DNA of 64,000 bases. Origin: Rebecca billardiae RCC1528 (lineage: Eukaryota; Protista; Haptophyta). Position 1 is the stretch's first letter. The number at the start of each line of letters is the position of its first letter. The stretch is taken from assembly GCA_965240325.2 (NCBI GenBank), contig OZ251230.1:868001-932000 (forward strand). Direction: 5' to 3'. This document shows, one piece after another, positions 5,199 through 14,102 of this stretch. Under the pieces are notes generated by a model, which did no database searches, was not told the DNA's origin, and saw nothing but the letters and a program-made list of their open reading frames with translations. Made by a program: the position numbers and the translations under genes.

Positions 5199-6365
5199 TC
5201 AGTCCCCGGCCAGCGCGGGCGTGGTGAGTGCCAGCGCCTCCACGCGGCGCTCGAGCTCGGCGAGCACGGCTGGGGTATCATCGGCAGCCTCGCCAGTGAT
5301 GGCATCGACGAGCGCGCCGGTGAGGCCCCGGGGGCCGTCCGTCTCCGCCGCAGCGGATGCGTGGCCCTGCGCAGCAGCAGCGTGCGGGTGCTCCAGCGCC
5401 GCAGCACTCTCCACGTGCTCGAGCACGGCGCGCACGAACGCATCCATTGCCTCGCGGCACGCGCAGCGCTCGGACGTGAACGGCGCCGCGCTCTGCGCCC
5501 AGCGCGCGCCGACCTCCGCCGCGCACAGAGAGCGCAGGAACGCCCAGTCTCGCGCATCGAGTGCGCCCACGCGCACGTGCGCCGTGCGCGCGAGCAGCAC
5601 GAGGCCGGCGCGGGCCGCGCGCGCGCGCGGCACGTACGTCTCGCGATCGGCCTGGCTCTCGAAGTGCGACCAGTGCGCGCGGTACAGGTTGGGCACGCGC
5701 ACGTCGAGCTCGATGGCGCGCGGCGCGAGCACCGTCGTCGCGAACTCGATGAGCGCACGCGTGCACGACGTGCCGTGCTCCTTGTGCCGGCGGTCGTGGC
5801 CCGAGCTGTGGTGGCACGGCTGGTACGTGAGGAAGAGCGTGAGCGTGCCGCCGTGCGCGCGCGGCTCGTCGAGCGTGGCGCGCAGGGCCGTGTCGCGCAG
5901 CGCGAACTGCTCCGCGTGCACGTTGTCGTGCGTGCTCCCGCGGTAGCAGTTTGTGTACCTTGCCACGTACAGCGGCGGCAGCGCGTCGGCGCCTGTCGAG
6001 GCCACGTCGAGGCGCGCGACGCATGCGACCGACTTGCGCTCGCACTCGTCGCGCGAGCCTTCGCCACGCAGGCAGGCGCAGGCAGTGCCCGCCTCGGGGC
6101 ACGTCTCTACGTGGAAGAAAGCGGCGCAGAAGTCGCCGGCCGAGCCCAGCAGCGCCGGCGTGGCGCCATCCGCGCCTCTGCGCAGCGCCACAGCGTGCGG
6201 CTCGCCGTACCAGAGGCTTCGCGACATGGAGCGCCCGGGCGCCGAGCAGCGACCGTCACACTCGACGGCGGCGCGCGACGGCCGCTCGCTCGCCGCGAGC
6301 TGCGCGAGAGAGCGCGCAGGCCTGTCAGTGTTGGCTTGCCGCCTGTGCGGCGGCACGTACGCCAT
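5199..6365 (-). CDS. AID/APOBEC-like zinc-dependent cytidine deaminase
   Basis: YTNC...NVHAEQF (HxE), TLFLTYQPC-x15-SC (PCxnC), downstream NLYRAHW; motif order matches the AID/APOBEC fold; ATG 6365 (MAYVPPHRR). Confidence 0.75.
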   Translation of the reverse strand: MAYVPPHRRQANTDRPARSLAQLAASERPSRAAVECDGRCSAPGRSMSRSLWYGEPHAVALRRGADGATPALLGSAGDFCAAFFHVETCPEAGTACACLRGEGSRDECERKSVACVARLDVASTGADALPPLYVARYTNCYRGSTHDNVHAEQFALRDTALRATLDEPRAHGGTLTLFLTYQPCHHSSGHDRRHKEHGTSCTRALIEFATTVLAPRAIELDVRVPNLYRAHWSHFESQADRETYVPRARAARAGLVLLARTAHVRVGALDARDWAFLRSLCAAEVGARWAQSAAPFTSERCACREAMDAFVRAVLEHVESAAALEHPHAAAAQGHASAAAETDGPRGLTGALVDAITGEAADDTPAVLAELERRVEALALTTPALAGD

Positions 6366-6526
6366 CGTTCCGCAAGAAGACTGATGAATGATGATCCGGT
6401 TCCAGGATTCGTCCATTCGTCCAAGGAATGTCGACGGAACTCATCACAGCTCTGGGCTCGGTGCCTCCTCACGGTCAGGACTCTCAGCATTCGGCGGCGA
6501 GCGGCTTGCCCCGTGGCTTGGGCGCG

Positions 6527-7818
6527 ATGTCGATGCTGCACGATCTCGCCACGTCGGCAGACTGCGCGGTCGGGCCATCCGGCGTGAACCCGCTCCACGC
6601 CCTCGCTGATGCGGTCGAGCGCTCCACCTTCGGCACCCGCTCGCCCACCGCGGGCGCGGGCGATGCGCGCGAGGCGTCGGGCAGCGCGCGCGCACCGCGC
6701 GAGGCGGTGGAGGCGCGTGTCCAGGCCGAACACGCCGCGTTCGTCGAGGCATTCGAGCGCGCCGGGGCGCACGCGAGCACCGCGCCATTGCCACCATCGG
6801 CGCACCTCGAATCCGCCTGGGCTGGCCCCGGCCCCCGGCTTGGCGGGGCTATGCGCACGCACGGCGCCGGCACGCTCGACTCAGCGTGGGCCGCATCGAG
6901 CAGCCAGCTGCACGTGCAGCCACCGGCGCTGGCCGACTTCCACCCGGCGGTGCAGGCGTGCTTCAAGGCGCTCGCGCAGCCGAACGCGCCCAACAGCTCG
7001 GCGCAGCTGCGCGCCGCCGCCGCCGACGTCGCGCGCACGCTCCCGCCGCCCGCGCTCGCCCAGCTACACGCGCGCGCGAGCCGATTCGCTCGGCACGTGC
7101 ACGGCGGCGCGGAAGGCGACGGCGCCGTCGCGGAGCTGTCGCGCGCGCTGGGCGTCCCGCCGGCCGCGCCGGGCATGCCGCCCGGCGCGTCTGTGCGGCA
7201 CCAGCAGCTCGGCGACGCGACGGCGGCGGAGGTTGCCGAGGCAGACCGGTGGGCGGCTGCGTTCGCGCGCGAACGGCCGCCGCCGCCGCCGCAGGCAGGG
7301 CCGGCCCAGCTGCTGGGCGCGGGCGGGATGGCGCCGTTGCGCAGCGCGTACGGCGCGCCGAGCCTCGGCGCGACGTGGCAGCCGGCAGCGAGTCGTGCAG
7401 CCGCGTCCGCAGACCGAGCCGTGTCGCGGCCCGAGGACGCGGCTCGTGCCGCCGAAGCCGCCGCGTCGGCGCAGGCCACAGATGCGCCGCTGCTCGCGCG
7501 CGGGGGGGATGGTTCGGACGCGCGCGCGGCGCGCGGCTCGCGCGCCGAGGTGCGCGAGATCACCAGGCCGATGATCGACGCGCTTGAGGCTGGCGCCGCA
7601 GCGACCGCCGACCCGCAGCAGTCCGCCAGGCTCGCAGACTCTCAGCTGCTCGCCTTCCTGCGCGGGCTGCACTCGGGAGATCTCGATCTCGAGGGCCTCG
7701 AGGCGGGAGATCTCGATCTCGGGGGCCTCGGGGCGGGGGCCGCCCAGGGCGGAGCGCAGCAGCTGAGCGCGGAGGAGCGCGAGCGCCAGCAGCAGCCGCA
7801 GCAGCCGCCGCCGCCGCC

Positions 7819-7860
<42 letters not shown>

Positions 7861-8971
7861 GCAGCAGCAGCAGCGGCTAGCAGAGGCCCTCTCAGGAGAC
7901 CTGGCGGATCAGTCGCTCTTCGAGGGCCTCTGGAACGAGCTGGCTCGCAGCGGCGCGGCCGAGGACGCGGGGGCGGGGCCGGCGCACGCCGATGGCACCG
8001 AGGCCGCGCTGCAGCGCACGCTGCGCGCCCTGATGGCCGACGGCACCGCGGCCGCCGCGCCGCGCGAGCGCCCCCCGCAGCGCGTGTACGTTTTCGAGTC
8101 CGCCAACCCGTTTGCCTCGGAGGTGGCGCCGCTGGAGCGCGCGCACGCGCTCGCGGCGGAGGGCCGGCTGGCGGAGGCGACGCTTGCGGTGGAGGTCGCC
8201 GTGCAGCGCTCGCCGCAGGACTCGCGCGCGTGGCAGCTCCTCGGCCAGCTCCACGCCGACTCGGACGACGACGCGCGTGCGATCGTTGCGCTCGAGAACG
8301 CCGTGGCCGCGGACGCGCACAACCTGGACGCGCTGCTGCTGCTCGGCGTCTCGTTCACGAACGAGCACGAGCAGGGGGAGGCGCTCGCGCGGCTGCGGCA
8401 CTGGCTGCGCGCGCACCCGAGCTTCCGCACGCTCGCCGGCGCCGCCACCACCGACGCCGCCGCCGCCGCCGACGTCGCACTCAACCCGTTCAGCGCGCAC
8501 GCGCAGCTGACGCAGCTCTTCCAGACGGCGGCGCGCGAGGCGCCGCAGGACGCGGACGTGCGCGCGGTGCTCGGCGTGCTCTTCAACCTCTCGCGCGAGT
8601 ACGAGGCGGCGATCGGCGCGTTCACCGACGCGCTCGCGCTGCGCCCGGACGACTACTCGCTGTGGAACAAGCTGGGCGCGACCTGCGCGAACGCGCTGCA
8701 GCCCGAGCGCGCGCTGCCGCACTACGTGCGCGCGCTCGAGCTCAAGCCCGACTACGTGCGCGCGCTCACCAACCTGGGCATCTCGTACGGCAACCTGGGG
8801 CGGCACATGGAGGGCGCGGCGTGCTACCTGCGCGCGCTCGAGCTCAACCCGCGCGGCGTGCACATCTGGGGGTACCTGCGCATGCTGCTGCTGGGCGCGG
8901 GCCGGGACGACCTCGCGCAGCTCGCAGACACTCGCGACATCGAGGCGTTCAGGGGGGTCGTCGACTTCTGA
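6527..8971 (+). CDS. PEX5: Peroxisomal targeting signal 1 receptor PEX5
   Basis: Conserved N-terminal Cys (LATSADCAVG..NPL), WxxxF motif (WAAAF), YVFESANPF, C-terminal TPR cluster (LWNKLGATCAN, LKPDYVRALTNLGISY); an in-frame upstream ATG at 6428 is an alternative start. Confidence 0.92.
7820..7873 (+). repeat. CAG repeat encoding polyQ within PEX5
   Basis: (CAG)n tract read as QQQQQQQQQQQQQRQQQQ. Confidence 0.9.
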
Positions 8972-9134
8972 CTCTGACTCTGAGACTCGCGGCGTCGTCT
9001 CATCGGACCAGCTGGCATGCTTTCACGGCGTCACTGGCTATGCTCTGCCACCAACGCCGACTTCGTGTCGACGATCGGGCACTGCCGCCGACGAATCAGG
9101 AGACCCGCGTCGTCCGCTACGCCTGCGTCGTTAA

Positions 9135-9137
<3 letters not shown>

Positions 9138-9180
<43 letters not shown>

Positions 9181-9210
9181 ATATGTGTATTCGTCTGCTG
9201 TGACTGTATA

Positions 9211-9262
<52 letters not shown>
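9138..9262. repeat. Two (TA)n microsatellites (9138-9176 and 9216-9262)
   Basis: Seen directly, between the convergent 3' ends of PEX5 and the 2OG oxygenase. Confidence 0.95.
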
Positions 9263-9264
<2 letters not shown>

Positions 9265-9484
9265 CACTTATTTGAAGAGTTTGGCAGAGAAGTGGCGGCG
9301 GGCAGCCGCAGCATTATTGCCGACGATGATATGCTGCTGCCGGTCAATTTTTATTGAGCAGAACGACGACTCAGCATGTTGACACCGTTGATGAGGCGGC
9401 TACTGTACTTGCTGTCGTCATCAGTAACGTCGTCATCAGTGACAGTTCCAAATTTCTTGATTCTGAAAGTTGCGTCGTCACGAC

Positions 9485-10678
9485 TCACGTGTTGCTCTTG
9501 GCGAGCTTGGCGCGCAGGTGCTCGCCCGCACGCACCGGCCCGTGCCGCGCGCTGTCGCCCGCGCCGGCGAGGATGGGCTCGATCAGCGCGTCATCGCGCG
9601 GCCCGGTGAAGAAGACGAGGCTGAGGCGGCGGCGCGCGATGGCATCGTTCGACACGCGATGCATCGCTGAGCGCCAGCGGCCGTTCGCCCAGAGCGCTAT
9701 CAGGTCGCCCGCGTTCACGATGAGGCCGCCGGGAGGGACGCTCACCCACGCGCCCGCAGCGCTCGCGGCGCCCTCGCCGTCGGCGCCTACCGCGCCCGAC
9801 GCCTCGGCCGCGCGGAAGACCTGCAGGCCGGGCACCTCGGGGTCCTGCATGAGCAGGGTGAAGCCCTGGTAGTCCGTGTGCGCAGAGTAGCGCAGTGCGC
9901 GCTCCTCTCCCTGCGGCGGCGCCGCCTGCGCCGGGTAGTGCGCCAGCCGGAGCGCGTTGGAGGTGGTGTCGCGATAGGCGGCGGCAAACACCCCAAGCGG
10001 CACGCCGAGCGCATCGGCCGCGATGCGATGCAGCACCTCGAGCGTCGCCTCCATGCTGGCCCAGTACGCGCGCGCGTGCGGCAGCAGCTCGGGCGGGAAG
10101 TGCGGACGCTGGGCCAGCCCGGAGCTGTCTGCCGGCGGGTCGCGCTTGATCACGATGTTTTCCACCAGGTCAGGCGGCGCTTCTTCCGGCTGGCCGGCGG
10201 CGTCGGGGCTGTCGGGCGATGTCCTGCCGACCGCCTCGACACCCATGGCGGTGTAACCCTCGGGGCCGTACGACCCCGACGAGAGCGCGAGCTTCTCTGC
10301 GAGTGGCCGATCAAAGAAGGCGAGGGCGCCCGCGCGCACGCCCTCTGTCGCCTCGCGTGGCACCGAGTGGCCCACGACGCGCGCAAAGCCCCATGTCCGC
10401 ATCGCGTTGTCCCACTCGCGGGCGACGCGAGCGCGCGCTCTTGCATCCGCCTCCGCGTCCCCACTCGGTGACACATACGCCGAGATGTCGATCTCGGGCA
10501 AACCAGTGTCCGCAGCGGCAGTCGCAGCGCGGGCGAGTGGCTGCGCCCGGCGCGGATAGGGCAGGCACGATCGGCCGTGCGCACTCAGCGACAGCAGTGG
10601 CAGCGCCTTGGCTGACGGGCGAACGAGCAGTGCGCGCATGGGAAGGAAGAGGGCGAGCGACAGCAGCGTGCTGAGCAT
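9485..10678 (-). CDS. 2-oxoglutarate/Fe(II)-dependent dioxygenase (IPNS/DIOX_N family)
   Basis: LPEIDIS, WGFARVVGHSV, LRLAHYP, HTD...H...RLS motifs (AHTDYQGFTLL, SAMHRV, RLSLVFF); signal/transit-like N-terminus. Confidence 0.9.
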   Translation of the reverse strand: MLSTLLSLALFLPMRALLVRPSAKALPLLSLSAHGRSCLPYPRRAQPLARAATAAADTGLPEIDISAYVSPSGDAEADARARARVAREWDNAMRTWGFARVVGHSVPREATEGVRAGALAFFDRPLAEKLALSSGSYGPEGYTAMGVEAVGRTSPDSPDAAGQPEEAPPDLVENIVIKRDPPADSSGLAQRPHFPPELLPHARAYWASMEATLEVLHRIAADALGVPLGVFAAAYRDTTSNALRLAHYPAQAAPPQGEERALRYSAHTDYQGFTLLMQDPEVPGLQVFRAAEASGAVGADGEGAASAAGAWVSVPPGGLIVNAGDLIALWANGRWRSAMHRVSNDAIARRRLSLVFFTGPRDDALIEPILAGAGDSARHGPVRAGEHLRAKLAKSNT

Positions 10679-13398: not shown

Positions 13399-13748
13399 GC
13401 GCGTTGCATTTCATCGCATGCATGGCGATCCGCGTGCGAGGATGCGTGACGAGCGAGTACGGCGAACACGGGCAAACTAGCAGAGTACGGTAGTACTTAG
13501 CTCATCATACATCACTACGCTAGCTTTAGCTGCGCTATTGTCAGCTATTGAGACGACCGTTACCAGCTAGATCGAGTCTAGTAGAGTGATCGGCTGACAG
13601 TCCAGTTACTCAGTCAGCAGCCTGTCAATCACTCGACCGGTATAGTAATAAAGAGTAGTCACGGAGAGTCAGCAGACTCAGCAGTGCGGCATAAGCTAGT
13701 AGTTAGGCTGTAGTTCATCATAATATATATTCTCGTATAACACTGCTA

Positions 13749-13750
<2 letters not shown>

Positions 13751-13821
<71 letters not shown>
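13751..13821. repeat. (TA)n microsatellite
   Basis: ~70 nt TA run. Confidence 0.95.
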
Positions 13822-13825
<4 letters not shown>

Positions 13826-13967
13826 GCTCTGGCTCCGGTTAACTCCCTGCCAGTCCGGTCATAGAAACCGGGCGTACCGAAAATGATCTTCGCATTCCTG
13901 CGGCCGAATGAACGCCCGAAGTGTCCCACAGGGCTCTGACAAGTAGGGTTACTATGGATCATGCAGC

Positions 13968-14102
13968 CAATAAGTGCCCAGGGTGTGAAACTCAGTTTGT
14001 GATGACTACTTCAGACTCTATTTTTTCATAGCTATTTACCCAGTCCGGTGACATATTTCCAATAGCTACGGGTGCATCCGGATCGCTCCCGCGGCTCCCG
14101 GA
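13968..14102 (+). repeat. ~135-bp direct repeat, copy 1 (copy 2 at 17529-17659)
   Basis: CAATAAGTGCCCAGGGTGTGAAACTC...CCGCGGCTCCCGGA is near-identical at both sites. Confidence 0.9.

Follow-up and report, generated by a model that had tools for sequence, protein, structure and literature searches.

The closest described relatives of the deaminase considered here were set out by Iyer et al. (2011), who listed a 'novel AID/APOBEC-like, ZK287.1-like' group with members in nematodes, in Nematostella and Micromonas, and in the haptophyte Emiliania (PMC3239186, Table 1). The parts of that paper drawn on here characterise the group by a CxxC insert, an extended loop that joins strand 4 to helix 4, and a 'D-aromatic' motif together with a tryptophan in two extra C-terminal helices (PMC3239186). 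Krishnan et al. (2018) name the same group the cnidaria-algae-APOBEC4 clade, one of the classical AID/APOBEC-like deaminases, and the corresponding sections of their paper ascribe to it an insert in loop 1 that binds metal, as well as inserts separating the two cysteines of loop 5 (PMC5889660). An HxEE motif in helix 2 and, at the N terminus of the domain, a Zn-chelating insert are further traits given for the clade in these excerpts (PMC3239186; PMC5889660). A literature search for algal APOBEC work gave nothing specific, and the literature searched yielded no biochemically characterised protein from the algal AID/APOBEC-like branch. The second described system that bears on this locus is a short linear motif of the helicases Ded1 and DDX3. 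In DDX3X, 38-YIPPHLR-44 maps an eIF4E-binding site (PMC9642913), and residues 21-27 of Ded1 help to bind eIF4A, R27 being critical (PMC7343385). The pattern YxPPx[ILMVA][KR] is found convergently in the translation-linked proteins eIF2A, eIF3g, NOM1 and TDRD3 (PMC3510515). Association of eIF2A with eIF4E does not depend on its YxPPxLR motif (PMC3510515), so that the partner of the motif is uncertain even in animals.

The window, by which we mean the whole stretch of 64,000 nucleotides of Rebecca billardiae RCC1528 that was analysed (contig OZ251230.1, positions 868,001 to 932,000), holds near its beginning an open reading frame whose product is, as the best explanation of the evidence as a whole, probably a deaminase of the AID/APOBEC superfamily that depends on zinc and is not secreted. 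An earlier note on this DNA had pointed to an HAE motif, a PC...C motif, a cysteine cluster and an N-terminal YVPPHRR, and translation finds all of them at the places it gave. The features, in window positions, are as follows.

5199..6365, minus strand: coding sequence of the AID/APOBEC-like deaminase, complete and intronless, 388 aa plus stop; an open frame that aligns end to end with its homologues.
6339..6365, minus strand: MAYVPPHRR, a Ded1/DDX3-type YxPPHxR short linear motif, within a stretch predicted to be disordered (residues 1-56, pLDDT below 50).
6195..6260, minus strand: C36-x3-C40 ... H57 element upstream, a candidate additional set of metal ligands.
6042..6128, minus strand: Cys/His cluster CAAFFHVETCPEAGTACACLRGEGSRDEC (FFHVETC..CAC..C), verified by translation; the loop-1 insert with C80, H85, C98 and C108 (C-H-C-C), with helix 1 (76-82) on one side and strand 1 (113-120) on the other.
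5910..5918, minus strand: catalytic H150-A-E152 (HAE), with the Zn ligand and the proton-shuttle Glu, where helix 2 begins.
5763..5819, minus strand: P183-C184 ... C201, PCHHSSGHDRRHKEHGTSC; the two catalytic Zn cysteines, PC-x16-C, around a 16-residue loop-5 insert.
5670..5690, minus strand: loop 7, Y228-R-A-H-W232, linking strand 4 to helix 4.
5394..5555, minus strand: AAD-type C-terminal helices that follow strand 5, with D273-W274, W289, R304 and D308.
5202..5393, minus strand: Ala-rich C-terminal tail, poorly conserved and mostly disordered, with one short predicted helix (364-379).

How far these elements are shared was read from the family to which the protein belongs. A word-index protein search gave six homologues with 36-56% identity to the window deaminase, one of them Diacronema lutheri KFE25_003586, whose UniRef name is 'APOBEC-like N-terminal domain-containing'; this kinship puts the window in or near the pavlovophyte haptophytes. 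A profile made from the first eight sequences and searched against 1.84 billion proteins retrieved 450 cluster representatives at E<=1e-3, or 326 with the limit at E<=1e-10, and residue conservation was counted in an alignment of 79 family members. In this alignment H150, E152, P183, C184 and C201 are invariant (79/79). The cysteine cluster noticed earlier stands for C80 (78/79), H85 (75/79), C98 (77/79) and C108 (78/79), but C89 is a cysteine in only 39/79 members and C96 is not conserved. Likewise, the long His-rich insert between the PC and the second cysteine is present, with 16 residues, but its richness in histidine is not conserved in the family: within it only H185 (77/79), S187 (76/79), G189 (73/79) and S200 (77/79) are kept, and the PC..C spacer varies from about 9 to 34 residues among members. 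Among members that have the region upstream of helix 1, C36 is a cysteine in 49/49, C40 in 44/46 and H57 a histidine in 49/51; this region is not confidently placed in the AlphaFold2 model. From these residues we infer that the extra Cys/His clusters bind zinc. Loop 7 keeps Y228 in 75/79, R229 in 70/79 and W232 in 74/79 members, and the C-terminal helices keep W274 (76/79), R304 (79/79) and D308 (73/79). The residue that follows the HxE is Q in the window deaminase (HAEQ), as in 14/79 members, with E in 21/79 and D in 18/79.

Several relatives known from metagenomes or transcriptomes carry the deaminase domain in fusions, with CCCH zinc fingers in P0035 and P0129, with an AlkB-like 2OG-Fe(II) dioxygenase in P0048 and with a calcineurin-like phosphoesterase in P0145, and these partners are consistent with a predicted action on single-stranded nucleic acids. 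By inspection, no hydrophobic signal-like stretch was seen at the N terminus of the window deaminase, and the protein is therefore probably neither secreted nor plastid-targeted, in contrast to the SNADs. A viral origin, or viral homologues, can be ruled out within what was searched: no relatives were found in the viral contigs of IMG/VR, and the predicted viral structures of BFVD have no significant match to the deaminase model.

The N-terminal motif deserves separate consideration. The earlier note was right that YxPPHxR occurs at the N terminus of Ded1/DDX3 (PMC9642913, PMC7343385, PMC3510515), and in the deaminases it proves to be a conserved trait of the family. With the strict pattern Y-x-[PA]-P-x-x-[RK] within the first 60 residues, 30/134 family representatives have it, 25 of these 30 at residue 2-6, and so do 26/56 of the representatives with an initial Met and a long N terminus. 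A quick FastTree phylogeny distributes the carriers among several deep subclades: 5/6 members of the window deaminase's own clade, 7/9 of the clade of its paralogue and 11/23 of a 23-member clade have the motif. A 51-member clade of short proteins is nearly devoid of it (1/51). Some of the apparent absences are truncated gene calls, for example proteins that start MPPHRR, and the true N terminus of the D. lutheri orthologue, MAAYVAPHVRR, is absent from the deposited model. Judged by this distribution, the motif is a real, conserved module of the deaminase family, located in a disordered N terminus.

A pattern scan of the R. billardiae genome for the motif gave 8 matches, against 7 for a reversed control, and this count alone is no more than chance. 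Four of the 8 matches come directly after the start Met: the deaminase, an exon that begins MAYVPPHLRN, and two further ORFs. The exon has Ded1 (6.5e-69) and DDX3X (9e-65) as its best PDB matches and is listed as follows.

G000:C7:1185203.. (L013:104-1360), plus strand: first exon of the Ded1/DDX3 orthologue of this genome, starting MAYVPPHLRN at residue 1.

In this helicase the motif thus comes earlier than in the yeast (residue 21) or human (residue 38) protein. As to the two further ORFs, the one at G000:C16:726636 (L011:137-2896, plus strand) begins MALYVPPHKRGGGG, and the one at G000:C17:58277 (L012:78-1868, plus strand) begins MAYVPPHRRGK and is RGG-rich. A Pfam search of both was without a match; they may be further carriers of a Ded1-type N-terminal motif, or first-exon read-through.

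What might such an enzyme do? The deaminase would act on single-stranded RNA or DNA, converting cytosine to uracil. The loop-1 C-H-C-C cluster and the loop-5 insert sit where APOBECs contact the substrate strand, and these two extra structured loops would set target preference. The contacts that the motif makes with eIF4A or eIF4E in yeast and human suggest that it might recruit the deaminase to mRNPs or the cap complex. Perhaps it is through the disordered YxPPHxR N terminus that the enzyme reaches capped mRNPs or initiation complexes, where it could edit or restrict transcripts, viral or transposon ones among them, or could simply travel along with them. A part in editing or defence, a location in RNP granules and a use as base-editor scaffold, which the earlier note had proposed, are hypotheses. 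That a large algal APOBEC-like branch is wired into the cap-dependent translation machinery through an N-terminal Ded1/DDX3-type YxPPHxR peptide is a tentative proposal, which we regard as possible but on balance unlikely. If it holds, these enzymes would be translation-coupled mRNA editors, or restriction factors riding on (viral or transposon) mRNPs, by a mode of recruitment not yet known from any AID/APOBEC enzyme.

The main rival to a catalytic deaminase is a protein that has the APOBEC fold but neither mutator nor editor activity, that is, a nucleic-acid- or protein-binding regulator like APOBEC2 or APOBEC4. It could, for example, use the N-terminal motif that it shares with Ded1/DDX3 to compete with them for eIF4A or eIF4E and thereby modulate translation. 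We know of no robust demonstration of deaminase activity for its closest named relatives, APOBEC4 and APOBEC2, and APOBEC4 is among the closest Pfam and Atlas affinities of the window deaminase. Moreover, the N-terminal peptide of the deaminase is nearly identical to that of the Ded1/DDX3 of its own genome, and with only two copies in that genome the family is without the lineage-specific expansion typical of arms-race deaminases. However, the invariance of H150, E152, C184 and C201 across 79 diverse members argues for retained catalysis, and the joining of the domain to an AlkB-like dioxygenase or to CCCH fingers points to base chemistry on nucleic acids. We consider a purely regulatory protein quite unlikely, and keep to the reading of a zinc-dependent deaminase that would act on polynucleotides.

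A second alternative concerns the class of enzyme. An AlphaFold2 model made from an eight-sequence alignment, which is shallow, has a mean pLDDT of 63.5; its core (about 58-325) lies mostly at pLDDT 70-95 with dips in loop 1 and in the loop-5 insert, of which residues 186-194 are of low confidence, and residues 1-56 and 326-388 fall below 50 and appear disordered. In the model, strand 4 spans 219-224, helix 4 spans 238-260 and strand 5 spans 264-268, followed by C-terminal helices at 271-279, 283-290 and 298-324, so that the features of the helix-4 division are present: strands 4 and 5 are separated by a helix, and there are additional C-terminal helices. Foldseek against the PDB ranked APOBEC and AID structures at all positions from 1 to 50 among the matches listed, the best being APOBEC3H (E 1.3e-6), with TM values up to 0.70. 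In a structural comparison of the model with 48,161 PDB representatives by VIA-align, APOBEC and AID structures reached Z scores of 10.7-16.8 (APOBEC3H 16.8, A3G 15.8, AID 15.7, APOBEC1 14.4, APOBEC2 12.6), and after a clear gap came CDADC1 (6.4), dCMP deaminase (6.2), ADAT2 (5.4), TadA (5.2) and ADAR (4.3-4.6). The structural alignment covers APOBEC3H in its entirety and runs to residue 324 of the deaminase. Thus the predicted fold clearly groups with AID/APOBEC and not with nucleotide, tRNA or ADAR deaminases. The AID/APOBEC-like identity proposed in the earlier note is upheld by these scores, and the grouping with free-nucleotide or tRNA deaminases that it had named as the result that would speak against it was not what the structural comparison gave.

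A sequence-only search of the PDB gave nothing significant with the protein or with the 79-sequence profile (profile E 0.29). All Pfam matches of the window deaminase itself are sub-threshold, namely dCMP_cyt_deam_1 (E 8e-4), APOBEC4 (E 5e-3; 17.5 bits against a cut-off of 27.2) and NAD1 (E 0.027; 15 against 27). Among the 79 members, at E<=0.01, APOBEC4 is the most frequent match of all Pfam families (34), followed by APOBEC_N (33), NAD1 (33) and SNAD4 (26); dCMP_cyt_deam_1 matches only 4/79 and PF18774 APOBEC4_like only 1/79. The relatives P0100, P0145 and P0048 lie above the gathering cut-offs of APOBEC_N, NAD1, SNAD4 or APOBEC4, P0100 reaching 49 bits for APOBEC_N against a cut-off of 25. 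In the language-model Atlas, which we use as a lead only, the nearest neighbours are haptophyte proteins and then APOBEC4 and APOBEC4_like clusters. It is conceivable that the protein is instead a free-nucleotide (CDA/dCMP) or tRNA (TadA/ADAT) deaminase with decorative inserts, given that its lowest Pfam E-value, sub-threshold as it is, belongs to dCMP_cyt_deam_1. In ADAR and ADAT1, too, the second and third Zn ligands stand far apart. The structural scores of 6.4 or less for dCMP, CDA, TadA, ADAT and ADAR enzymes against 10.7-16.8 for APOBEC/AID, the 4/79 members that match dCMP_cyt_deam_1 against 33-34/79 for the APOBEC families, and the AAD-type C-terminal helices of the model make such an enzyme highly improbable. 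An ADAR/ADAT1-like reading of the long cysteine spacing is rejected on the predicted structure (ADAR Z 4.3-4.6).

There remains the gene itself. The open frame extends over 5199..6416 on the minus strand (405 codons), with the stop codon at 5199-5201. We take the conserved ATG at 6365 as the true start because the homologues begin M-A-Y-V-P-P-H; for the same reason the in-frame ATG upstream, at 6416, is ruled out. The automatic call (P0001, 342 aa) begins at Met47, too far downstream. The codon-position GC of the frame is 0.74/0.59/0.89, which marks it as a true coding frame in a genome of about 70% GC, and the ORF is the top match for its family within its own genome. It has a neighbour in common with its D. 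lutheri orthologue, each deaminase gene standing head-to-head with a PEX5-like TPR gene.

6527-8971 of the window, plus strand: PEX5-like TPR gene, about 162 bp from the deaminase, ATG to ATG.
L010:3527-5992 of D. lutheri, minus strand: PEX5-like TPR gene, head-to-head with the deaminase orthologue.

By this shared arrangement the deaminase genes of the window and of D. lutheri are positional orthologues. The window ORF is a real, conserved gene: long ORFs do run through all six frames of this window of about 70% GC, but with GC3 at 0.89 against GC2 at 0.59 in the deaminase frame, hundreds of homologues that have kept the catalytic residues and a syntenic orthologue in D. lutheri, the probability of a chance ORF in GC-rich DNA, or of a pseudogene, is practically nil.

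Some further observations on the locus and its counterparts may be added. The PEX5-like TPR protein carries an N-terminal Cys...NPL motif and a poly-Q tract, and its TPRs are C-terminal. In D. lutheri the deaminase ORF is single and continuous (L010:5991-7121, plus strand; GCA_019448385.1, JAGTXO010000028.1), and the gene model KFE25_003586 (P0004) has a spurious exon 1 and leaves out MAAYVAPHVRR and the CDGRC element. The start codons of the D. lutheri pair overlap (CATG), which means that each 5' UTR overlaps the coding region of its partner, or that the true starts differ. In the window, GC dips to 0.42-0.43 at 9001-9500 and at 13501-14000, against a background of 0.65-0.8, and these low-GC stretches may be intergenic or repeat islands. 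The R. billardiae genome (72 Mb, 41 contigs) has this deaminase and one paralogue, 30% identical, on contig 32 (G000:C32:785747-786580, minus strand; L016:1099-2127, minus strand). The paralogue has a PC..C spacer of 10 residues and a Gly/Arg-rich insert preceding helix 4, and is without the N-terminal YVPPH; its nearest relatives P0072, P0080, P0090, P0140 and P0146 have the YxPPHxR motif.

As the gene class is already known, the find mainly extends the catalogue. Nevertheless, a compact, intronless haptophyte gene present in two copies in a complete genome offers a convenient entry to the APOBEC-like enzymes of protists. It could serve the questions whether these enzymes mutate DNA or edit RNA, what the extra, putatively zinc-stabilised loops recognise, and whether the enzymes take part in antiviral defence. 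The N-terminal peptide shared with Ded1/DDX3 suggests, in a concrete form that can be tested, how such an enzyme might find RNA.

In comparison with known systems, the window deaminase appears largely ordinary, as a member of the already described algal/cnidarian APOBEC4-related clade rather than a new kind of enzyme. Like the cnidaria-algae-APOBEC4 clade, as far as the excerpts of PMC3239186 and PMC5889660 describe it, it has the catalytic HxE and PC..C, an insert between the catalytic cysteines, a Cys/His insert in loop 1 at the N terminus of the domain, an extended loop that leads from strand 4 to helix 4, and a D-aromatic motif and a tryptophan in extra C-terminal helices, and it occurs in a haptophyte. 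The assignment is made from these shared features and from the Pfam and Atlas affinities, the published Emiliania, Micromonas and Nematostella members being compared by description only. Since the long PC..C spacer and the cysteine cluster match the description of the clade, they would be known synapomorphies of it and not new oddities; the earlier note, which took both as unusual, has to be corrected on this point by the published traits in those excerpts. The window deaminase differs from the clade so described in its HAEQ, where the published motif is HxEE (E or D stands there in 39/79 relatives), and in the additional conserved CxnC...H element upstream of helix 1. PF18774 APOBEC4_like barely detects the family, and in the same excerpts no mention was found of a YxPPHxR at the extreme N terminus.

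With the vertebrate enzymes APOBEC3H, APOBEC3G, AID and APOBEC1 the window deaminase shares its overall predicted fold (Z 14-17 over about 170-190 aligned residues), the Zn centre, the loop-7 aromatic motif and the C-terminal helices, yet it is only 14-17% identical to them in sequence. The vertebrate proteins have a short PCxxC and are without the loop-1 C-H-C-C cluster, without a disordered N-terminal translation-factor motif and without a long Ala-rich tail. With the motif of Ded1/DDX3X (of the ELM LIG_eIF4E_2 type, found also in eIF2A, eIF3g, NOM1, TDRD3 and CDV3) the deaminase family has in common the heptad Y-[VI]-P-P-H-x-R, its location in a disordered N-terminal region and, often, an N or G that comes next. 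In contrast to Ded1/DDX3X, the motif is here carried by a deaminase and not by a helicase or an initiation factor, it lies at residue 3 in the window deaminase rather than at 21 (Ded1) or 38 (DDX3X), and an R takes the place of the hydrophobic (phi) residue that precedes the final R in the motif of the helicases.
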